This document shows, piece after piece, positions 4,543 to 60,437 of a DNA stretch of 64,000 nucleotides; the stretch's first letter is position 1, and each line of letters begins with the position of its first letter. The notes beneath the pieces were generated by a model. It was not told the DNA's origin, searched no databases, and saw only the letters and a list, made by a program, of their open reading frames with translations. The stretch lies in the NCBI GenBank assembly GCA_029953675.1, contig JAMWBK010000006.1:1984001-2048000 (forward strand), given 5' to 3'. This DNA is from Rhodosorus marinus CCMP1338. Its lineage: Eukaryota; Plantae; Rhodophyta. Made by a program: the position numbers and the translations under genes.

Positions 4543-5377
4543 GCCGTTGATGCAATAAATAATTCGAGAACCACACAATAACAATAATAGAAAAAAGTAC
4601 CTAAAGACAACGAAACAGACACACCAAATCGATTCCTTGACCGGGAGTCACCAGTAATCATCGATCCCGGAACAGCTCATCCTCAACAGCGCACAAAAAC
4701 ACGTCGTCCCCATGAGCTCCGAATAGAAAATTATGCACAATATTGTTCCTAATTAAGAGTTTTATTTCTAACTAATGCTCTATTTCAGCCATTTAATAGG
4801 ACTTATACTCAATATTATTTTTGAAATATGGATAGATCTCGTAGTTCAGAGATATCTTCTCTTGATTTTGACCATATGGAATAGATTTTGACCTCGTGTA
4901 AGCTGACTGGCTTTCCTTGTTGGTTTCTGTTCAAATCGATCATTCGGGATATCGTCAACGTTGAGATGAAACCCTTGATAGCGTCTCTTGAGTACTCACT
5001 ATCTTCCGTGGAACACTTTTTCTGCCGATCGTAGAAGCTGACGGTACGATCTCGGATATCTGCATTCACCTGCATCAATGCAGCTCGTCAAAGATCTCCG
5101 TGCTCCTGATGTGATTGGAAAGCATAGACTATGTCTCTTGGTGTTCCAGCGACCTGCGGCCGAGGACTAGGCTGCACATCACACGACACCATTCAATAAC
5201 CAGAAGTATGACTGTTGCTTCCATATCGATCGATAGGTCGATTTTTCTCAGAACCAGGATGCATTTTCAAAATCCAATTTTTCTACCAGTTAGACAAATA
5301 AACAAAGCAAGTTTCCGAAACAGAGTGGAGACCTGACCCTCGCATGCCATACATATTACGTGTGCACGTATGTGTGA

Positions 5378-7325
5378 TTACTTTTCCTTCTTCTTCTTAA
5401 CCTTCTTCTTCTCCTTCGATTTGGACTTTGCACCTTCCTCGGGTTCTTCTTCTGCCTTTCTCTTCTTCGATTTCTTAACCTCTCCATCTGCTTCCGCGGA
5501 CTTGTCCTTCTTCTTCTTCTTCTTCTTTTGCTGCGTATCTTCGTCAACGTCCTCCTCTGCCTGATCCGCACTCTTCTTCAACTTCTTCTTCTTCTTTTGT
5601 ACAGGTTCTTCACCATCCTAGACCAGTGCAATGAACGAAGCATTAATGCTTAGCTGGAAACAGAGTAGGGAAAAGAACATGTCGGCGTGCACGACGTCTC
5701 CGACGTTTGTTTCGAGAATCTCCACCGCACTCATGGCTGGCGGGGATGACTCACCATGACCATATCCGCAGAATCGTTGTATGTTTTCGCTGGCTCATCC
5801 GGTGCAATATATACACCTTGGGAAGAGTTGCGGCCTGCTTTGCTAATAGCGTTGCTCTGTTTGCCTTCCAACTGCCTCAGTCGATTCTCAACCTTGAGGC
5901 GGTTCTCTTCACCAACAGCACCGTCATTTTCTCCCTCCCCGAGAGCATCTAGGCGGATCGAAAGGGCACATTTGGCCGCTAGAACGCGCGAGATCTTACC
6001 CTTGTGTTTCGGTGCCGCCAATCCAACAACCGACGCGTGATAGATAAGACCTGCCCAGAGCAATTTTCTCCACATGAGCTGATATCATTACATGAGGACT
6101 CCAGATCTGCGGCTACTCACCGTATTTTGGTGTTGCGTGCTTCGTTTTCAAGGCTCGGAAGAGCGCCTTCTCAGCTCCCAGCAGCTGTACCGTACTCGCA
6201 GGATATTTGGCAAGATTAAGAAGAGAGCCAGCATGGGCAATCAGCCGAGCCCCAACCAATTCTCCAACCATCGCAGTTAAGTTCGGCGCAATGGCTCTCA
6301 TACGATTCTTGAGATACTCGAACAGCTTGAACCTGTACTCCGATAGAGTAGTGACCTGCTTGATGGAATGTGAGAGAAAAAGGTTAGAGTACTCAGTGAC
6401 CAGAAGACTCAATGCTTTTCTGAGGGGAAAGGTCGAGAGAAAATGCCATACCTGGCTGCACAACGAGGTAATATTTCGGACGTCCTCCTCAGAGATTTCA
6501 GTACCCATGGATACTTCAGCGGCTTCCTTCAACTCCTCTTCGACCTCTTCCTCGAGAATATCCTTGAAATCGAGACCCTTTGCGTTGCTCCGAATCTTCA
6601 TTCGAGCTACGACTTGTGCGTATTTAACATTTTCGTTGATGATCTTCACCATCTCCGGGAAATGCCATCCGTACCATTCCTTCAGTCTCATTGCGTACGT
6701 ATTCAGCTCCTTGTCCAGGTCGTCCAAGAGCCCGATCGCCTGAATCGAGGAGACAGCCGGTTCCACTGTGAGTTATCGGGGTGACGGGTTGGTCCATGTT
6801 CTCTACGGTGATAATGGCGTGCAAACTTACCTGAACGATCATTGTATCGACTTTGTCTGGTGAAAACTTCAATTTGTAACGGGACAGAGAGTGGGCGAGA
6901 CCCAGAATCATGGCTTTGCGCTCGTGCTCTGTGGACTTTTCTCCTACGAGATCCTCAAAATTCGCTCGAATAACCCGAATTATCTCTTGCACCGACGAAT
7001 CAAATATACACTGGAGACCCAATTTCGACTTGATCGCATTTCCGAGCTTAGACTCCCCGACGGCGAGCTCCTCAGCGTCCTTCACATTCTTCTTCAAGAA
7101 CTTCTTGAGCTGCTTAGAGATCTTGCCCTCAACAATTGCAGTTGACGCGGCCAACGCATCCGTTGTGCTCTCAAACTTTCCAAACGCCTTCAGTCGCAGC
7201 GACGAGCTCAGCGAATCGCCTGTCAAAATCCCCCCAATCTCCTCCGGCTTCACATCCTTCAGCTTCGCAGTATCCGTCACCTTAAACAAAGCATGACCGG
7301 ACGGCGTCTCAAACAAAACCAACAT
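5378..7325 (-). CDS. NOP58: Nucleolar protein 58 (box C/D snoRNP core), multi-exon
   Basis: Starts [16 protein letters not shown]; contains [79 protein letters not shown] and a KKE/D tail. TAA at 5378-5380. Confidence 0.95.
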
Positions 7326-8375
7326 GTCTTTTAACAAGCGGGGCCAAAACACCAAAGCAAAATTCGAACCCAACCCCTAACCCACTTCCCAAAAATATCC
7401 ACCTCCAAAACCTCTACACGATGATCCTCCTAAACTATGCCCTAAGGTTCAAATACTTTCCTTAAGACATGTTTGCATCCGGCCTTCCTAGTTCAAACCT
7501 AATCGCGCTCTGCTAAACCCTCCGCAACTGCGCGAGAGGGTGACATCCTCTCCTCCCTGTACACGGCATTGGCCAACCTCCTTAAAAACAACAAAAGACC
7601 AAACACCGTCGACGCTCATAGCTGTGACAGTTATAATGAGGATAGCGCTCTAGTACTTATCTGCCGTATATGATATTTTTATACAACAATATTTTTGGAT
7701 AATAGTATAAGTATTATTGTACAAAACAATTGATCCCTATTATTATAACTGTCATCTACTGGGTGAACTCCTCAAGTTGATATGGCAAAGCAGGCAGATG
7801 GCCTCTATTTATTTTCGTAATATCCCAATATGTGTGCTAGCTTCAAGGAGAGGGGGGGGTAATAGGTTTTGGCGAGGGGTGTGATGATCGACAATTATGA
7901 ACAAGCTCGGGGGAAGTGGATAGGAGGGGAGACAGCGGGTTGGAGAGAAGGACGTTTCTTGTGTAGATTGTTTCTGTCGAGCCCACGGTGGCGCTCACTA
8001 CAGCATTAGTAGAGCGTTTGCTTTTTGTGAAATTTGTTATGAAAAACTTATGAAGTTTGTCCAGGTCGCGATGATGCCTACCGCTCGAGATGCACACTGG
8101 AGCAAATTCCGTTTATGGGTTTCCACGTTCTGCATCGCCTCCTCCAAATTGCCATAGGCGATCGAGTTTGAAGACGTGGGAGTGAGTGGCGGTGGATTGG
8201 ACAGGACCAGGAGTTTAATCTACAGTACGACCATTTCTGGAATTTCTGCTGGGAACGAATTTGGTTAATAGCATTACGCCCAGCAACCGGTCCGCGACAT
8301 GGGCTGAAGTCAACAATGGTTACATTTACATTATCTCCCGGACTAAATTATTCGATATTGCGAGACAAGCTAGTA

Positions 8376-11089: not shown

Positions 11090-12762
11090 TCACGCAATGG
11101 ATTCCGGGTCAGCTCTCCAGAGGGTGATCTCGGTCTGCTTAAAGTACCGACGATCGGCGTCGTCAACCTGAAACATAAAGTGTTCAATAGTGGAGTACTG
11201 AGCAAGAGGGTTCGCGAGAGGGGGCTAGTCCGGTATCAGACATGGAAAAAGTGAGCTCACCAAAACGAGATTGAGGAAATAACGAACAGAAAAAATGTTG
11301 TTCACAGATCGGTAGGTCCTATAAGTACGTAAACCAACGCTTACAAGTTTAGCGTGTTTGTTGTGCGTGAGAAACTCATTGCTTGTGGAAGTAAGTGTTG
11401 TACAGAAAATCTTACGGTGTCAGTGAGTCGTAAGCTGATAGGAAGAGACGAATAGGAATCTTCTCGCTTCGAACAGGAGCACCGTCCATGACCTACCGAA
11501 TACGACAACACCCATTAGCCAAGGACAGCCTCCCACCCACGATCTGCAGGAACGACCTGTGCTTACCTCAAACTTGCCAATCGTGTCAGTCTCATTATGA
11601 ACATTAGTCCCAGCAGGCCCAGCGCTTTCTTTCCTTTTCAACTCAATTTCCATCCGCTTGATTTTGATCTTAGCCTTTCCGAACGAGTCAGAATAACAAA
11701 TGACGGTTCTTAACCCTGCGTTGCTAGGTGAAAACGCGAGTTTTCCTTGAGGTAGACGCAGGTCCCAAGCCGTCGTTTGGCTGGACTGGTTCCTTACCAA
11801 CACGAAGTAGATCCATCCTCTTACCACGTCTGTCGTATGATACTTGGATCTATCGTAGTCGAATTCAATGTGGAGGACGTCCTCAATTCCGACTTCCATA
11901 CCTGATGTTGGCATGCACAAGGTGAGGTTGAGCCGGTTGGTATTCGGATCAAATGTGCCTGCGATGTAAGTTCGAAAGGCTTACGAATGGAGTTATTGAT
12001 TTCTGGTTCTGGTTGAGTATGCTGAACTGATATGTCGAACTCCTTCTTGAAGTCCGGGGATGTGTGGGGTCTCTGTATTGTGACGCGCAGAAAGTACCTC
12101 AGCTGAACCTACACACAGAGACAAGGATGACATGTCCTGATCAGTTGCGAAGAACTTCGCTCCGTAGAGGGAAATATACAAGGGCGAGTTCTGTGTACAT
12201 TAAGCCCGGAGTAGGTATCAAACGCCTTCTCTACATCTGAGAATGCGAACGCGTATTGCTTAGTCCCAGTAATAACCCCCGGTTCATCGAGCTCTCGTAT
12301 CAAAGAGACGAACTCTTGATTTTGGTCACGGTCATACAACCTGAACAAAGCAAAGGGGTGGGTGATGGAGTAGGCTTAAGAGAGGGTGCAGACGTATACA
12401 ATATGTGACAAGTGTTCCGCACAGTTCAATCGTTCCCACGAATTCTATTCTGACCCCAAGAGTCTGAAGCGCCTTCCCTTCTTTTACCGAAACTGTAACC
12501 TTTCCGCTGACGGAATCACGATGTCCGTACAATGGTAGTTGTTTCTCTTCACCCTTTGCATTTGGTGGCACTACCTTTACATATGGACGATTCTGGGCAC
12601 CATCGAGGGCCTTTTTTCGAAACCATAAGTTGAAGCGGAAGTCAGCGTCTATCCTATCTGTCGAATCTGATCCAATGTTGATCCGATCTTTCCGTGCTTT
12701 GTACTCACGAACGAGATCTGACAGGGCTGGGCCAACCCAAACAAGCTTAGGGCGGCGTCCAT
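11090..12762 (-). CDS. VPS26: Retromer subunit VPS26, multi-exon
   Basis: Exon 1 MDAALSLFGLAQPCQISF; then DSVSGKV..GVRIEFVGTIE, MEVGIEDVLHIEFDYDRSKYH, and C-terminal VDDADRRYFKQTEITLWR. TGA at 11090-11092. Confidence 0.93.
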
Positions 12763-13446
12763 CCACTTCTCGTGAAATCCTCAGCAAGGCAAAAAAATAC
12801 AGACTCGACCTCGCTTAAATCAACAATTCTCCTGCACTCTTGAGCTGGAAAAACTCACTCCTCAAACCCCCTCCCCACTCTCTTTCACCAAACAGCTCTC
12901 CCAGAAGATCAAGGGCCAAGAAAGCTCGAACTAACTCCGATCTTCATAGTCGAACAAGAGGATCTTCAACCTAAACAAAGCAGCCAAGAAAAAGCTACTG
13001 AGGGACATCCCACTCCCCTCCTTCCTAATTTCCACCTAAAGTTATGGTCCTTATCCGATGAATAATGATTGAACAATCATTATACTATCAATAAATACAA
13101 TTTTTATACGTTGAGCGAGAAATACTTTAATTCAAGCTAATTGGAATAGAAGTGGATATGAAGAATTTCCCTAAGGAGGTCAATGCTCTGGTTGAAGGGG
13201 TGACGTAGATTTCGATGTCATTCGTTTGCAACTGGTTGTCGATGTGTGGACCGTATGGTAATCTTGTACTGACTTTTGAAGGTGCTGCTCGTTGGGTGAG
13301 CAAACCTCGGATCGACCACCTCAACCCGATTTGACGTCCGCATTGTTTTGTGTTTGTGGACTGAGATCGTGTGAGGTTCGCGGGTTGGGTCTGAACTTTG
13401 AAGCTACCAATCCGCAAGACGTGCGTGCAAAAATTAGCTCATCCGT

Positions 13447-15434
13447 TTATGTAATCACAGTTGGCTTCTCACGTCCGGTGAAACCTTTCAGGTTTGATAC
13501 TTGAAGAGCCAAGTCGATGTACTCCTTCAGAGCAACTTGGGCATCAAGCAGCTGCTTTTCGGGATCGCTCTCATACTTTTCAATGTACATGCGAATGGTT
13601 GCACCGGAGGAACCAGTTCCAGAAAGCCTGAAGATGATTCTCGAGCTGTCCTCGAAGGCGAACATGAGTCCTTGTTTTTGAGCTACCGACCCATCAATGG
13701 GGTCCGTGTAGGAAAAGTTCGTCGCTGTGGTCAACTGCAGACGCGCGGTAACAACGAAGCCATGCGTCAGCAAGAGATCCATTGGAAAAAGGAAGCAACA
13801 AAAATTTACCCTCTTGCTTACCTTGACGCCAAAGTTATCGAGCTTCATCAACCCGTCAACCGCGTTCTTGTTCAGTCCGTCCTGAACCTCCGCCAGGTGA
13901 CCCATCATCTTCGCGGCGGCATCGGTCTCCACTCCTTCGTAGTCATACCTACTGAAGAAGTTTCGGCCGTACGTGGCCCAATGGTCCTTGACAATGCTCT
14001 CAACACTGACTAGCGGAGCAGATGCATCAGCATTCTTGACGGCAAGAATCTGCAGCCAGCAAAGAATAGCGAAAAGCCCATCCTTCTCCCTCACGTGATC
14101 TGCTCCAGTTCCGAAACTCTCCTCTCCGCAGATCTGCGCCCTTCCAGCATCAAGCAAATTTCCAAAGTACTTCCACCCAGTTGGAGTTTCGAAGCACTCC
14201 AGACCAAGCTTTTCTGCTACCTTATCAACTGCTCCTGCCGTCGGCATCGATCTTGCGGCTCCAGTTATCCTCCCCTTGAAGTAGGGAATACACTCCGACG
14301 CAAGAGAGACAATGACAGCCAGCGAGTCGTTCGGAGTGACAAAGAATCCCTTTCCAAGAATCATGTTCCGATCTCCGTCACCATCAGAGGCAGCCCCCAT
14401 GTCTGGGGCCGAGTCGTTTTGCGCTGGATCACACTTCTTAACAAGTTCTGCTGCATAAGTCAGGTTCGGGTCTGGATGGCCCCCTCCGAAGTCCTCAAGA
14501 CACGTACCTCTCATAACACTGTTTTCCGGGGCCCCCAGAATCTCGATGAAGAGCTTCCTTGCGTACGGGCCAGTCACTGCGTTCATTGCGTCAAAGAGAA
14601 AAGTGAAGTCCTCTCTGGCAAAAAGCTTTTGAATGGATTCAAAGTCAAACATGGTCTTCAAAAGCTCAAAGTAGTCCTGTGTTGAGTCAATAACCTCCAC
14701 TTCAAACTCTTTCGGCCCAGAGAACTTGCTGACTCCGATTTTGTCAATGTCGAACATGCTCACGCAGTCAGTAGTTGAGTCAGTCTCGCTAGCTGACGCC
14801 ATCTTCAGCTCGGAAATTTGGAGAGTCTGCTCAAGGATCTTCTCAGTTACTGATTCTGGGGCTGGTCCGCCGTTGGACACGTTATACTTGATCCCGAAAT
14901 CCTCCTCGGGTCCAGCCGGGTTGTGGCTTGCAGTCAAAATGATTCCACCTGGTATCCATCACCCGGGATTAGCGAACGTGGGGTATCGATCTTTGAAGGA
15001 AAACTACAGGCTACTCACCGTATAGACCTCGTTTCCGGATGACGGCCGACAAGCCAGGGGTACACATGATGCCACTCTGTCCAATGATCACCTTGGCAAC
15101 ACCGTTACCAGCTGCAAGTCGCAAAATAATTTGGATCGCCTCCTTGTTGAAATATCTCCCATCACCGCCCAGAGCAATCGTCTTCCCTATAGCATAAAAG
15201 AGCAGAGTTCCCACTAGATGTCAGTTCCGTAACAAAACCAGCATGCCAAAACCAAAACCATGCAACGAGCATCTCCAAACCTTCCAGATCATCCAGAGAA
15301 TTGAACAAGCTCTGAACCCAATTGGCAAGATAGTTCTCCGACGTGAACAGCTTGGTCTTCTTCCTAAGACCAGAGGTACCAGTCTTCTGGCCCTCGATCG
15401 GTTTCGTCTCCACACTCTTCACAACAAACGACAT
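13447..15434 (-). CDS. PGM1: Phosphoglucomutase, multi-exon
   Basis: [20 protein letters not shown], active-site TASHNP, metal loop [41 protein letters not shown]-terminal GREKPTVIT. Confidence 0.96.
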
Positions 15435-15485
15435 ATTTGATACGTTGCTGCAACTATAATCCTCAATACAAACAGGATTCTTCAA

Positions 15486-15535
15486 CCTTCCCTTCCCCTC
15501 CCTTCCCCCCTCCCACCCTCCCACCCTCCCCGTTC
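15486..15535 (-). promoter_or_regulatory. G-quadruplex-prone tract in PGM 5' leader
   Basis: Minus strand reads GGGGAGGGTGGGAGGGTGGGAGGGGGAAGGGAGGGGAAGG, about 50-100 nt upstream of the PGM ATG. Confidence 0.5.
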
Positions 15536-16257
15536 AAGATTCCCAACCCAGTATATGAACTTCCGCAAACTCGAATCCCTTCATACTTCCCCACTCAGCC
15601 CAAACCCCAAAACTTTCAAATTGAAAAATAAAATTCCCATCATCAAAATCTCAGCTGCCAAACTCCTTTAGATTCACAGGTTTCCTTTGTCCCAATAGAA
15701 AAATCCAATTTTCACGTCTGTTCGTCAACTGTTACCTACCCATATATTTTCAAAAAAAAGGAACAACGGACCGTACACGAGAGGCCATTTCGACCACCCC
15801 TTAGTTAACTCCAACAAGTCTTCTTATAATTAAAATAATTACACATATTTCAGCGAAGGTAGATACTCTATTTGAGGGGTGGGATAGATCGTCCTGTGAA
15901 TCCGATGCGGTCGATGTTGGATTTTTGTTTTATTCATATTGTGGAAGAAATTTGGGCCAACGTCGTCCGTTAGAATTATTTTGATTGAACAGATTTTTTT
16001 GATTGACTGAGTAGAGCGTATGGTTCTGGTTGGATGGGTATGGAAGGGGACTGGATAGGTGGGAATGGGTCGGCCTGTGGGGTTGTAAAAGCCTCGAGTC
16101 GTCGGAGCTATAGTGTCTCGTAAAGTAGAGGAGCGTTTGTAATCATAGAGGAAAAATGCTCAGCTCCCAGCAGTAGGGGCTGGAGTGTATTCGAATGATC
16201 GTGGATGGTAGTCCTATGGCGTTTGGAAGAGCGCCACCTACGATGTGGGTCAAAGAA

Positions 16258-16440
16258 CGGCAATGATGAATCTACTTACTCCGACAAACTGCTAGCTCTC
16301 CTTTTGCGTTGATCGTACAGTTTCGAAGAGCATAGGCGTAGTCTCTCCTCGTGGGCCTCTAGTTCTGAAGCGGTAGGGTTGGTTGTCCGCGATGATGTTC
16401 TTTACACTCTCTCAGCAGTGCCGCGACCAGCTGATTGCCG
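16258..16440 (+). ncRNA. Candidate box C/D snoRNA/scaRNA (~183 nt)
   Basis: Terminal stem CGGCA(16258-62)/TGCCG(16436-40); box C ATGATGA 16263-69; box D' CTGA 16365-68; internal stem GCGG/CCGC; box C' GATGATG 16391-97; box D CTGA 16431-34. Confidence 0.7.
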
Positions 16441-16571
16441 AGCCAAACTGGGCTCTTCCCCTATGCGGATGGGAGAGGGCAGTTGGGTGTTCTTGCGTGT
16501 TCAGTGAACCCAGCACCACCTCCCCCACCCGGCCCCTATTGAAATCCTCCACATCGGAAGAGAAGACTGAT

Positions 16572-16731
16572 CCAGCCCACCACAGACGTCCGAATAGATG
16601 TTGTCGCCTAACTTTGGGGCCTGTCTGCCATCTCTGGTAGAATAATAGAGTTCATTGAGCGTGGAATCTCATCCTCCGATCGAGAGTCGATCAATAAGAT
16701 TCTAGTCCACCGGGATTCTACTCCCATATAC
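16572..16731 (+). ncRNA. Candidate box H/ACA snoRNA
   Basis: 5' hairpin (CCAG/CTGG, AGAC/GTCT), H box AGAATA 16639-44, 3' hairpin (TAGAGT/ATTCTA, GTGG/CCAC, GAATCT/AGATTC, GATCGA/TCGATC), ANA box ATA 16726-28. Confidence 0.4.
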
Positions 16732-17437
16732 GCACGACCACGCAATTTGCAGTTTCTTCTCCTACACCGCGCTGTACTGTCACCTCCAATCTAAGTTTTC
16801 CAAGGACCGCATTCTGCCAGGGACCAGAAAACCCCTCTACCAGGACGCTGGCGTCCCTCCTAGCGCACCCTAAAAAACCCTCACAGGCCGGTCCATTTGG
16901 GCAGCTGCAGTCCGCACGCGCCCGAACCGATACTACTTGCCAAGGACGCACCAAAGCCCGAATCGGACTACGCTCATTCTTTCCAACGTCTAACCTAACA
17001 GTATCCTCAGAAAGTATATCATTCCCTGTCTTCAGCATTACAACATGGGCCAAAGCTTCAGTATCTTCTAAGCAAATCGACGACTCAACAGATTTTTTCT
17101 ACGCAGCATTTCAAAACCAATATAATTTCTTCGAATTTATTGAATTCAGAAGGTTTCATGAGAAGATCGTGTAGTTTTTCCTGCGCATCTGCTATGTATG
17201 GCTTACTTGTGTACGAGATTGGAAATGGGTTTGGGGAGGGAGGTGGCAGATGGATGATGTCGATGAAGTAGAACGGATTTCGTAGTGCCGTAGAAGGAGT
17301 GGAAACGGTCAGGGATCTTTTGCAAGATTTTGTTTGCAGGGGAAAGCAGTTTGAGTGTTTTTTGTTGCTTAGTTTGGGTTGAGAAAGTAATCTTATTGAG
17401 TTCTGGGGGGGGAGGGGCTGGTTGGGGGGTTTTCAAG

Positions 17438-19614
17438 ATGATGGAAGAGGATGAGATTGTGGACGGAGGGGATTTGGGAGCGGATGGGGCTGTTGGGGAC
17501 AATTCGAATGCTATGGATGAGCTTACCGAGACAATGAAGAAGGTTAATGTGAATGGAGTTCCGTATGAACCGCTTGCTGATGGTGAATACGATGCGATTG
17601 TCTTGGGAACTGGACTGACAGAATGTGTCATTTCCGGGATCTTGTCCGTGGCCGGTTTGAAGGTTCGTAGATGTGCGTCTTGTCTTTGATTTGTTCAGGC
17701 AGTGGACTTGATGATGCTTGCTTAGAAGGGGGGTTCCGCGCGAACGGGAAAAACTTGGGTTACCACTGCATAGGGATGGAACCAGCCTCGCGTTGCTTGT
17801 CGTTTACAAAAGGTACCTCCCAAATTTGACTAGGTTTTACACGCGGATAAAAATGAATATTACGGAGGCCAATCAGCATCAGTGAGTTTAGAGCAATTGT
17901 TCGACAAGTTTAAGGAGTCAAAGGTGGAGCTGCCGAAGGACGTCTATGGAAGCTCGAGAGACTACAACATCGACTTGATTCCGAAGTTCATCATCGGAAA
18001 TGGCGACTTAGTTCGGCTCTTACTTCATTGTGACGTTGCGAAGTACTTGGAATTCAGAGTTGTCGAGGGTTCGTTCGTTTACAGCGGCTCCAGACCCCAC
18101 AAGGTAACACAACACGTGCTTAACTTTCTGGCCTAAAACAAAATCTGTTAACTGGCCTTATGGATCTTTGACAGGTCCCTGTTACTGCGCGAGAGGCGAT
18201 GACATCTGGTCTTCTAGGACTGTGGGAGAAAAACAGATGTAGGCAGTTCTTCAGCTATGTGAACGGCTACAATCCAGACGATCCGGAGGCACATGAGAAG
18301 AAGGACTTGAAGAAAATGACGATGCGGGAGTTGTTCAAATACTACGCACTACAGGCTGAAACAATAGAGTTTGTCGGTAAGAGCAGGTCACAAGCTATAG
18401 CGTGCCAACAGGCGAAGCTGGAGTTTGTTGATACGATGTGCTTTTACTCATCTTTGTCGCAGGTCACGCTTTGGCTTTGTACACTGATGATACTTACTTG
18501 GACAAGCCTGCGGAAGTCACTGTAAAAAAGATCCAGCTATACGCAAACAGCCTGCTGCGCTTCACGAAGAGCCCATATCTGTATCCTTTGTACGGTCTAG
18601 GTGAACTCCCTCAGGCGTTTGCTCGACTGAGTGCAGTCCATGGAGGTGAGCAGTGTAAAACGAGCGCAGAAACAGTGTTTGGTCGAACATACGTTTGTGA
18701 CCTCGTCTATGACTTCGTTTTGCTTAGGAACATTCATGCTAAATACGCCAATTGACGAGATTCTGTACAACGGAAGTGAACAAGCGATTGGGATAAAATC
18801 AGATGGCAAGGTTGCGACTTGCAAATATATTGTCGCCGCGCCTGAGTACTTTAGAGAGAAATCGATGCCCGTTGCAAAGGTAGCTATCTGAAAATGACTG
18901 CTGAGAGAAGCTTTTGAAGTCGAAGTCGGAGGGCCGACAAATTCACTGCAACAATCTTCTTATCGTGTGCAGGTCGTACGGTGCTATTGTATCCTGGCCG
19001 AACCACCACCGCATACTCGAGAATCTGGATCCTGTCAGATCGTCATCCCTGCAGCGCAGGCTAAGCGCCAGACTGACATCTATGTCCTTGTCCTCTCAGC
19101 GGACCACAAGGTTACTCCGGGAGGGCGCTATGTGGCGCTTGTGTCAACAACTGTGGAAACTGACAATCCCGCCGTAGAAATTCAGTTCGGCCTCAATCTC
19201 CTTGGTCATATCATTGATAAGGTGGTTACTGTTGATGACGTCCTGGCCCCAAGATCCAGCGGAAACGGTAAGCAAGTCCCGAGCAGGTCATCGATATCTG
19301 TCTGCTGATACAATCGGGTGACTTTGACATGGTGGATGAATCAGATGATAAGGTTTTCCTCTCGAGGGGCTATGACGCAACAACTCACTTCCAGACGACA
19401 AGCGCTGATGTATTCGATCTTTATAAACGGGTGAGTTTCGGAGCGCGCGGGGGAAAACCCCGCCGGTTCATAATCGCTCGCGACTTGGTGACAATTTTGG
19501 GACTCGGTTCTCCGCAATGGTGGTTTCTTACTTACTACTTTTCCGTTTCGCTTCTTTAAGATCTTTGGTCAAAACTTGGAGATCCAGACGAAGAACGCAT
19601 CAACAGAGGAATGA
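17438..19614 (+). CDS. GDI1: Rab GDP dissociation inhibitor, multi-exon
   Basis: [92 protein letters not shown] at 19612-14. Confidence 0.95.
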
Positions 19615-20307
19615 CCTGGTTAGAGCAGTTGAGGATGCAATGTGTGCTGCGATGTGAGTGGCGATTTCACTCTTATGTTCGTGACAACGAGAAAAAGGTT
19701 GTACATGTTCTGGCGGTCTGAAATCCGGTTCGCTTGGTACACGTGGTGTGGGCTGCGTACTTGGTTCATCCCCGAAGCGACTGGACGGATTGAGCGTGTC
19801 GAGTCCTTAGACGGCTTTTGGGACAGGCTGACCACGGAACTCCGAGATCGCTCATTCCATTTACAACAAGTAAAATCCAGCGCTTAGAGCAGGACTATAA
19901 CAGACGCATACTGTTCAGCCTCCAAGGTGGATTGTAACGCGTCCCCCTTTAGACAACTGTGCTCGACCCGCGCAGCTGTTGAAAGTGGCTAGCAGTCGAC
20001 GAGCTGACCAAAAACAGAGTCATTGAGAAATCCCTCTAGACGCAGGTATAGGAGCCTTACGTCGAGGTCGTGGCTTGCCCTCTTCCTGCTCGTGTGACAC
20101 GATACTTGTTTCATGAACTCGGACCTCAACACTCCTCATGCAGGAAACCAGCCTGCCTTCGGACGATTTTTTCTGCACACTCTCATCGTTCGTCATACAC
20201 AGCTTCGTCCAAGTAACGTCTTCATGTCAACCACCCCCCAAGAACGCCCGCGATATCTTTGCACCCCAGTTTCTGAAACTTCAACACGTCAGATACTAGA
20301 ATTGGGA

Positions 20308-20478
20308 GTAACCTTGATTGTAGCATTGGTTGTAACATTGGTTGTAACATTGGTTGTAACATTGGTTGTAACATTGGTTGTAACATTGGTTGTAACGTTG
20401 ATTGTAACATTGGTTGTAACATTGGTTGTCCCACATTGGTTGTAACATTGATTGTAACATTGGGTGTGAGACATTGGT
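20308..20478 (+). repeat. Tandem 12-mer array (ACATTGGTTGTA)n, about 14 units
   Basis: Read directly; the core units are near-perfect and the edges degenerate. Confidence 0.95.
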
Positions 20479-22443: not shown

Positions 22444-23788
22444 ATGAAACTACAACGCCAATCTATGATTGAGAAGGCTCACCACGGCTGCGTTTGGTGC
22501 GTAGCCTGGTCGCCATCTGGTGAGCTTCTCGGGAGCTGTGGGAATGATTGTGAAATTCATGTTTATGCGTTGAAGGAGGATGGGGAGCCTCTGGTTCCAG
22601 TGGTAAAAACGCGAGAGAATGCGTTTACTAGAACTATCCGGTCAATATCTTGGAGGGCCGATGGAAGGCACGACAAGATCCTCCCGGCTTTTTTTGAAAG
22701 CGCAGAAGGGGTTTTCGTTCCATGTCCTGACTTCTGTTTTGTCCGCGCTGTCGTTCACAATTTTGCAGGAGCATTGCAGCTGCCGGATTCGACGCGACGG
22801 CTTCGATTCTTAGCTTTAAAAACGATGAACTTGCGATTGTTGGTTTGCTTGACCTTCACGAGAGTGAGGTACAGATCAATCCGCCTGCCAGGAGTCCAGT
22901 GGAATAGACTGCAGATTGCCGGTCGCGGGCATACCTAACGGTAGTGTTTCGTTCGCCTCTTAAAGGTAAAGAGCGTATCCTACTCCCCTTCCGGAGCTCT
23001 TCTTGCCACATGCAGTCGCGACAAGGTTGTTTACATATGGGAGAGCGGCATGGACGACGATTTTGAATGCATTGCGGTTCTAAACGGTCACAAGCAAGAC
23101 GTGAAAGATGTCGTTTGGCATCCTACATCAGAACTTCTCGCTAGTGCTAGCTATGACGATTCTATCCGTCTATGGTACTGCCCGCTTTCCCCCAGCTCGG
23201 TTCAGAATTGACAACAGGGTCGTCCGCACTGACGTTGAGACTCGCCAAATGAAACCTGCAGGAAAGAGGACTATGATGAATGGTACTGCTGTGCCAAACT
23301 CTCAGGCCATACCTCCACCGTGTGGTCGTTAAGCTTTGACGAGACGGGAGATCGATTGGCCTCTGTGTCTGCAGACAGGCAGCTGATTGTCTGGCGGCAG
23401 TCCAGCAAGGAGGGCAAGCCCTTGGGGTCTGATCCTCAGTGGAGGGAGGTTTGGAAAACCGACGAGACCGAGCACAAGAGACCAATCTATTCTGTAAGGC
23501 TTGTTCACACACGATCGCTTGTCCAGAAATTCTTATCATCCGGTTCCACACGTTAAAACAACTCAGGTGGACTGGGTCGGTAGTCGTATTGCTACTGGCA
23601 GTGGTGATGATTGTATAAGGATATTCACGGAAACATCTAATGATACCTTTGAAATAACCAGCTGTCAACCAAAAGCCCACAGAGGAGACGTCAACTCTGT
23701 CGCCTGGCACCCACAGAAGGAGGGCTTGCTCGCATCAGCCGGTGACGATGGAGATATCAAGATTTGGAAGCTCGAGGAGGATGTATAA
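22444..23788 (+). CDS. CIA1: Cytosolic Fe-S assembly WD40 protein CIA1, multi-exon
   Basis: [128 protein letters not shown]. Confidence 0.95.
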
Positions 23789-59484: not shown

Positions 59485-60437
59485 ATGGAGCTTTTCGAGG
59501 ATGGGAAAGGGATTGCCGTTGGAGACTGGCAGTTCAGAGTAGAAAAAGGCCCCATCGGTAGTTCGGAGGAAACGGACAGTCTGTCTTCAAAGCTGAATAT
59601 GAAACTTCCCGGCATGGTCTTCACGAAGAATGTGGTGGAACTCGACGCCAAGTTAACAACGCCGTCGGAGTCGAAGGAAAGTGTTTTTTTTAAAATGTCG
59701 ATTGATCCCGTCGGCGCGTTGAGAGGAATTGGGAAGAATGATCCAAGGATTCAAGTTAAAGCTGCAAAGCATTGGGATGCGAGAAGGGCCCATGAAGACG
59801 TTCAGGTCATCAAAGCAGAGACCGATTGGACTTTCAGCTCGACGTATATGGGTGACATTGTATCTGGTATCAGTTCGATTGAAGAGAATACAACCCGAGG
59901 AATCAACATCGAAAAGCTGAAACGAAGAGACATTCCTGTACTGTACTTCAACGAGGCAGTCTTGTACGAGGACGAACTTGATGACAACGGTACTTCGTGC
60001 TACAACGTGCGACTGGTAAGATGGAACATCCTTTAGGGCAAATCGTGGCAGCTCAAGGTTTCTAATGAACAAGGTTTCCTTGTCCGTGACAGAGAGTTTC
60101 CGAAGGATTCTTCCTCCTCCTCGCTCGATTCTGGCTACGGGTCGACGGAGTCGTCGGCCGTCTCTACGAGACTAGATACTACTATGAATTTGGCACAGAT
60201 GCTATTGTCAGAGATTGGAAGCGTCAAGAGAGCTTTCTACAGGACCTTGGAGTGAGAATTGATGCAAGCATTCGGACGCTCGTGTTCCACCTCGTCGATG
60301 AAACAGCAGATTAAACGAGTGTTTTTTTGGGTTTGACTCCGCAGGGAAGAGAGGAAGTACTCCAGACTCCTGAACGAGCGTCAAAGTACCTGAAAACAGT
60401 TGCCCACGGGCGTGAAGCACTGATCTTGTCCAAGTGA
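59485..60437 (+). CDS. TIP41: TIP41-like PP2A regulator, multi-exon
   Basis: LPGMVF, IQVKAAKHW, DWTFSSTYMG, INIEKLKRRDIPVLYFNEAVLYEDELDDNG, LARFWLRVDGV..RLYETRYY. Start codon approximate. Confidence 0.92.

Follow-up and report, generated by a model that had tools for sequence, protein, structure and literature searches.

A 183-nt RNA encoded on the + strand at 16258-16440, in the spacer between the genes for PGM and Rab-GDI, is probably the product of a genuine box C/D snoRNA gene that is unannotated, lineage-specific and unusually long. The assignment draws on nested C/D and C'/D' motifs with perfect closing stems and on their expected frequency in the window (the whole 64,000-nt stretch of R. 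marinus DNA analyzed here). The sequence-only reading of this DNA had proposed a fully formed, unusually long + strand C/D RNA divergent from PGM, a description that the motif statistics support.

The candidate is closed by a terminal stem in which CGGCAA (16258-16263) is the perfect 6-bp complement of UUGCCG (16435-16440), all elements being read on the + strand. Box C, AUGAUGA at 16263-16269, is an exact match to the RUGAUGA consensus, and box D, CUGA, is seen at 16431-16434. Within this frame, box D' (CUGA, 16365-16368) is joined to box C' (AUGAUGU, 16392-16398, one position off the consensus) by an internal stem-loop at 16370-16390, formed by 4 bp between GCGG (16370-16373) and CCGC (16387-16390). 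Two features that the box C/D class demands were therefore found: boxes C and D with a short terminal stem, and between them D' and C', which gives the order C-D'-C'-D. The spacer from C to D' measures 95 nt, that from C' to D 32 nt. The former consists of a long 5' part (16270-16339) and a putative D' guide (…CCUCGUGGGCCUCUAGUU, 16340-16364), assigned by its position relative to D', and the whole arm is weakly structured (z = +1.68). Counted upstream from D', the fifth base is U16360, for which the predicted modified base is an A. Similarly, a putative D guide (…CAGCAGUGCCGCGACCAG, 16399-16430) was assigned by its position relative to D, with A16426 as the fifth base upstream and a U as the predicted modified base. 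The RNA body folds less stably than shuffled sequences (z = +1.82), which was counted in favor of a snoRNA. Thus, the architecture first described by eye held in full: all boxes and both stems are present, the arm is of the length given (~95 nt), and both guide sequences had been quoted correctly.

The frequency of such motifs was examined on both strands of the window. The outer motif was defined as RTGATGA followed 50 to 300 nt on by CTGA and closed by a Watson-Crick stem of 5 bp or more, and gave two matches: the candidate, with a 6-bp stem, and a match with a 5-bp stem in a WD40 coding exon. The latter (23273-23432) was rejected as a snoRNA on account of its location in the exon. For a stem of at least 6 bp, 300 second-order Markov simulations gave an expectation of 0.06 outer motifs per window, and one was observed, the candidate. 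The inner motif (CTGA, 0 to 2 nt, a stem of 4 bp or more, 0 to 2 nt and RTGATG) was expected 0.44 times per window and was likewise observed once, nested in the candidate with its elements correctly ordered; for a given 170-nt interval, such nesting has a chance of ~5e-4. The joint expectation for the outer and inner motifs is ~3e-5 per window, a figure that rises to roughly 1e-3 without the stem requirement, the inner motif having been defined post hoc. An accidental origin of the nested architecture is very unlikely under either the strict or the loose definition.

The alternative that these figures address is that the boxes and stems are coincidental, lying in a non-functional spacer between two promoters from which no stable RNA is made. 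In its favor, 6% of windows would contain the outer motif alone by chance, the arm between C and D' has an unusual length, and the searches described below yielded no guide target, Rfam family or transcript and no support from conservation. However, the internal D'-stem-C' motif is unique in 128 kb (both strands together), exactly nested and in the right order, and a joint expectation of ~3e-5 to 1e-3 per window leaves coincidence an unlikely explanation.

The position of the candidate was defined relative to the neighboring genes. In the NCBI annotation (GCA_029953675.1, contig JAMWBK010000006.1), which was consulted for window positions 3447-25434 and holds seven annotated genes there, PGM is on the - strand with its start codon at 15441, and Rab-GDI is on the + strand with its start codon at 17445. 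The 2-kb spacer between them carries no gene model in that annotation. Transcriptome contigs from other R. marinus strains (MMETSP/JGI) place the 5' end of the PGM mRNA at 15491/15492 or beyond and that of the GDI mRNA at ~17313, the latter mapping contiguously with no spliced exon upstream. Because the GDI mRNAs begin near 17313 and are contiguous, the candidate RNA is not in a GDI intron or 5'UTR; together with the PGM mRNA end at 15491/15492, this places it in true intergenic DNA, outside the mRNAs and introns of both genes. The + strand open reading frames of the spacer had no Pfam match, and two reading frames across the candidate RNA had no relatives in large protein collections. The earlier impression that the spacer has no credible + strand open reading frame was thus borne out by the Pfam result and by the lack of an NCBI gene model. 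No tRNA genes were found within the window. Downstream of GDI, a 12-nt minisatellite (GTAACATTGGTT, about 14 copies with 87% matches) occupies 20308-20478 and gives rise to repetitive open reading frames in several frames.

A gene with NOP5NT and Nop Pfam domains (Nop56/Nop58 family) is located at ~5385-7332 (-) in the same window. Hence, at least one snoRNP core component appears to be encoded here. The gene lies ~9 kb from the candidate snoRNA, and this proximity is probably coincidental.

The R. marinus MMETSP transcriptomes, in which PGM and GDI transcripts are present, yielded no transcript of the locus when searched with two frames and by exact look-up. Between the MMETSP strains and the genome strain, coding exons differ by 5 to 9% and the GDI 3'UTR by ~20%, as measured by comparing contigs L122-L125 (JGI samples 3300017118 and 3300016967) with window positions 13434-15492 and 17313-19908. 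Divergence of this order suggests that the strains labeled R. marinus are possibly different species. The PGM-GDI synteny was absent in Porphyridium purpureum.

The base composition upstream of the candidate had been taken to mark a gene start, in the form of a G/T-skewed leader. A G excess does exist at 16000-16199, with a GC skew of +0.62 at 16000-16099 and +0.32 thereafter, but it proved to be non-specific. All seven annotated genes (start codons at 4549, 7332, 9916, 12769 and 15441 on the - strand and at 17445 and 22587 on the + strand) have a G-rich sense strand near the start codon, extending throughout the last 300 nt in 6/7. In addition, 6/7 genes show an antisense G excess in at least one 100-nt bin 400 to 800 nt upstream of the start codon (skew -0.32 to -0.66), and this upstream excess is also seen at genes with no divergent partner. 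The pattern looks like a genome-wide GC-skew signature of promoter flanks. Since it is common to promoter flanks here, the G skew is not evidence of a + strand gene.

The skew would nonetheless fit a precursor whose start lies at ~15800-16010, in an AT-rich zone shared with PGM. The AT-rich region and the G-skewed stretch that follows it (15800-16100, no strand assigned) form a possible shared bidirectional promoter, in which the sign of the skew flips near 15850. On the other side of the candidate, in the half of the spacer that adjoins GDI, the + strand of 16500-17100 has a C excess (GC skew of roughly -0.3 to -0.4). This excess mirrors the G skew near PGM, and divergent transcription from the GDI promoter may be its cause; CACCCTAAAAAACCCTCA lies within this stretch at about 16868-16885. 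A 17-nt direct repeat, GAYTSAACAGATTTTTT, is found on the + strand at 15983-15999 and 17082-17098, in each case just upstream of a G-skewed stretch: the supposed leader of the candidate and the 5' region of GDI. It has no other copy in the window and is not enriched elsewhere, and the two copies are compatible with chance.

Independently transcribed and polycistronic snoRNA genes of yeast and plants resemble the candidate locus in being intergenic, lacking an open reading frame and having a structured 5' flank. No TATA-like sequence is present within 200 nt upstream of the 5' end of the RNA, a point of difference from such genes. A precursor processed at its 5' end is thus favored over a capped primary transcript. 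Independent transcription of the candidate is plausible. The 5' flank (16110-16257, +), a possible precursor leader with processing hairpins, has a minimum free energy of -44.5 kcal/mol and is more structured than shuffled sequences (z = -2.35, with 4/200 shuffles as good). It could hold processing hairpins or processing sites of a precursor.

A different route to the same RNA would be release from an intron, by splicing and debranching, of an unannotated non-coding host gene that starts near 16000. GT donor-like sites do occur upstream (e.g., GTAAAG at 16120), a YAG acceptor-like sequence, TGTTCAG, ends at 16503, 63 nt past the RNA, and the G-skewed stretch at 16000-16200 resembles gene 5' ends in this DNA. 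GT and AG sites commonly arise by chance, however, and the intron would need to be ~380 nt long, compared with 66 to 159 nt for the nine mapped PGM and GDI introns; nor was a spliced transcript found in the MMETSP transcriptomes. An intronic origin is accordingly quite unlikely.

The sequence-only reading had placed the C/D RNA in a polycistronic snoRNA cluster, with a single precursor that would also yield hairpins at 16130-16250 and an H/ACA-like RNA at 16572-16731. Apart from the structured 5' flank (z = -2.35), what speaks for such a precursor is an AGAAUA hinge of the ANANNA type at ~16639 and, in 16650-16731, a lower stem of 10 bp with AUA behind it. The hinge is, however, the sole H/ACA feature that fits in 16572-16731 (+). 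This stretch folds no better than shuffled sequences (z = 0.06 for the whole, -0.6 and -1.3 for its halves), its 5' hairpin is only a mini-stem of 6 to 7 bp, and its 3' end has AUA where ACA is expected. In H/ACA RNAs the pocket-to-box distance is usually 14 to 16 nt, whereas a hand count gave 18 to 33 nt here, depending on the fold. An H/ACA snoRNA is accordingly not supported, and the stretch was excluded from the feature. The hairpin described at 16443-16490 (+), 3' of the C/D RNA, does exist (-20 kcal/mol) but is indistinguishable from chance (z = -1.0). The region contains no second C/D motif, no Rfam match and no complement to conserved rRNA. A polycistronic cluster requires at least two units on one strand and in one precursor, and only one unit here passes any snoRNA test, which also separates the locus from the polycistronic genes of yeast and plants. 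The cluster model is thus most improbable, and the feature is best confined to the single C/D RNA at 16258-16440.

Known families were searched next to the motif analysis. Rfam covariance models gave 0 matches over the whole window at gathering thresholds. With permissive filters and E values up to 10, nothing relevant was found in 15700-17300, including with the U3, U8, U13, U14 and SNORD models. The Rfam comparison, which had been named as a check from the outset, therefore links the candidate to no family either at threshold or at E up to 10, and by this measure it is a member of no curated Rfam family.

Guide targets were sought in 120 eukaryotic rDNA stretches from metagenomes, fetched by the universal 3' end of 18S rRNA, of which ~10 comprise a complete 18S-5.8S-LSU unit. 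The set thus represents foreign rDNA. For a positive control, the conserved targets of U14, U38/snR61 (the SNORD38/snR61 site is described in PMC6461891) and the U24 region were looked up and were present in 15 to 30 loci of the set. Three possible guides were considered, namely the stretches that precede D and D' and the one that directly follows box C. In box-anchored searches the three scored 12 to 13, and the D and D' guides 12.5 to 13, compared with means of 10.6 to 11.8 and maxima of 13.5 to 14 for shuffled guides, so that none did better against the 120 rDNA units than its shuffled counterparts. Put as guide complementarity (at least 10 nt beside D or D'), no match beat the shuffles within this foreign rDNA.

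Searches that were not anchored on the boxes gave the same picture. Neither an unbiased duplex search with the whole RNA nor a G-U-tolerant search revealed a credible target in the 120 rDNA units, and a pure Watson-Crick search found no complement of at least 10 nt in the RNA that was common to more than two loci. When a 10-mer index of conserved rRNA was run over the whole window, 16000-17200 contained no Watson-Crick complement of at least 11 nt. The C-to-D' arm showed no significant complement to rDNA and no bipartite pairing with h45 or h34. Searched against the window itself, the guides returned self-matches only.

The best lead for the D' guide was the LSU segment GA(C/U)UAGAGGCC, with 11 to 12 bp in two of the rDNA loci (L003 and L035), which is at chance level relative to shuffled guides. 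By the fifth-base rule, the methyl group would fall on the A of UAGAGG. In yeast numbering this site would lie near A1009, which we take as a lead only. It was rejected as the U38/snR61 site, which is ~124 nt downstream. A 16-nt complement to loci L002 and L070 was rejected, as it spans box D' itself and falls in a non-conserved segment.

Elsewhere in the window, the 14 nt at 11886-11899 (+) are perfectly complementary to conserved LSU rRNA (AUGGAAGUCGGAAU), with CTGA 2 nt later. As a snoRNA, 11886-11905 (+) was judged to be a chance match, being antisense to a Vps26 exon and lacking a box C. Similarly, 60068-60079 was rejected because it has no boxes.

The guides had been called possibly orphan. 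They show no pairing with conserved rRNA above shuffles, and the RNA matches no Rfam family; this part of the claim stands for the conserved core only; "orphan" therefore applies in a limited sense, with respect to the conserved rRNA core and curated families. Because no guide matches conserved rRNA above shuffles, the targets most likely lie outside the universally conserved rRNA core, in variable rRNA segments, pre-rRNA spacers or another RNA.

Comparison with established snoRNAs shows where the candidate resembles the class and where it departs from it. Like the canonical box C/D guides (e.g., the SNORD38/U38/snR61 and U14 families), it has the full box set in the order C, D', C', D, a terminal stem adjoining C and D, and single-stranded stretches of guide length just 5' of D and D'. 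Canonical box C/D snoRNAs are usually 70 to 120 nt long, whereas the candidate is 183 nt, and its 95-nt C-to-D' spacer is atypical. It is not complementary to the U14, U38 or U24 target sequences that are present in the test set. Identity with U14 was rejected, there being neither a Rfam U14 match nor complementarity to the U14 target sequence. The 3' domain of U3 consists of a C'/D terminal and a B/C internal kink-turn, and the candidate is similar in combining a terminal kink-turn with an internal one closed by a stem. In contrast to U3, no GAC, A' or A boxes were seen by eye in the 180 nt upstream, and U3 identity was rejected, as no U3 model matched at E up to 10.

A further comparison is with guides of rRNA acetylation, whose antisense elements pair on either side of the acetylated C, in helix 45 or helix 34 of 18S rRNA. 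Passages of PMC5464676 and PMC9226516 describe snR4 and snR45 of yeast and SNORD13/U13 of vertebrates and plants as 18S acetylation guides, and a passage of the latter gives these guides two antisense elements. Like them, the candidate is a long box C/D RNA for which the conserved rRNA core offers no methylation target. It differs in showing single 8- to 10-nt matches, some of them with G-U pairs, and no second element. Identity with SNORD13, snR4 or snR45 was rejected, as the bipartite 18S pairing (helix 34/45) was not found. Nevertheless, these RNAs provide a model for a true orphan, that is, a long box C/D RNA specific to red algae in which neither the arm nor the guides serve rRNA methylation; the chance that the candidate is such an RNA is slim. 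By analogy with acetylation guidance by snR4, snR45 and SNORD13, its role might then be that of a chaperone for pre-rRNA folding or processing, or of a guide for another enzyme or RNA class, an assignment to which we give similarly little weight.

For the preferred reading, a single box C/D snoRNA gene, established box C/D snoRNP biology suggests how the RNA might be made and act. RNA polymerase II would produce a longer precursor, beginning at about 15850-16050 in the AT-rich region that also serves the divergent PGM promoter. The RNA would be cut from this precursor, and exonucleases would trim it to the terminal stem protected by proteins. Box C and box D, joined by the 6-bp terminal stem, can form a terminal kink-turn, and D' and C', joined by the 4-bp stem-loop, an internal one. 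Both motifs would be expected to bind Snu13, Nop58, Nop56 and fibrillarin. By the fifth-position rule, the particle would direct 2'-O-methylation to a U opposite A16426 and to an A opposite U16360, and the 95-nt C-to-D' arm may provide extra pairing or a contact of the chaperone type.

Almost nothing on nuclear snoRNAs of red algae was found in a limited search of the literature. The kind of gene proposed here is itself ordinary, and it is of use mainly for annotation and as a starting point for finding the remaining snoRNAs. That a well-formed box C/D gene was left unannotated implies that such genes can be found by motif alone in this genome. If its targets do lie outside the conserved rRNA core, the gene would add a lineage-specific modification or chaperone function.
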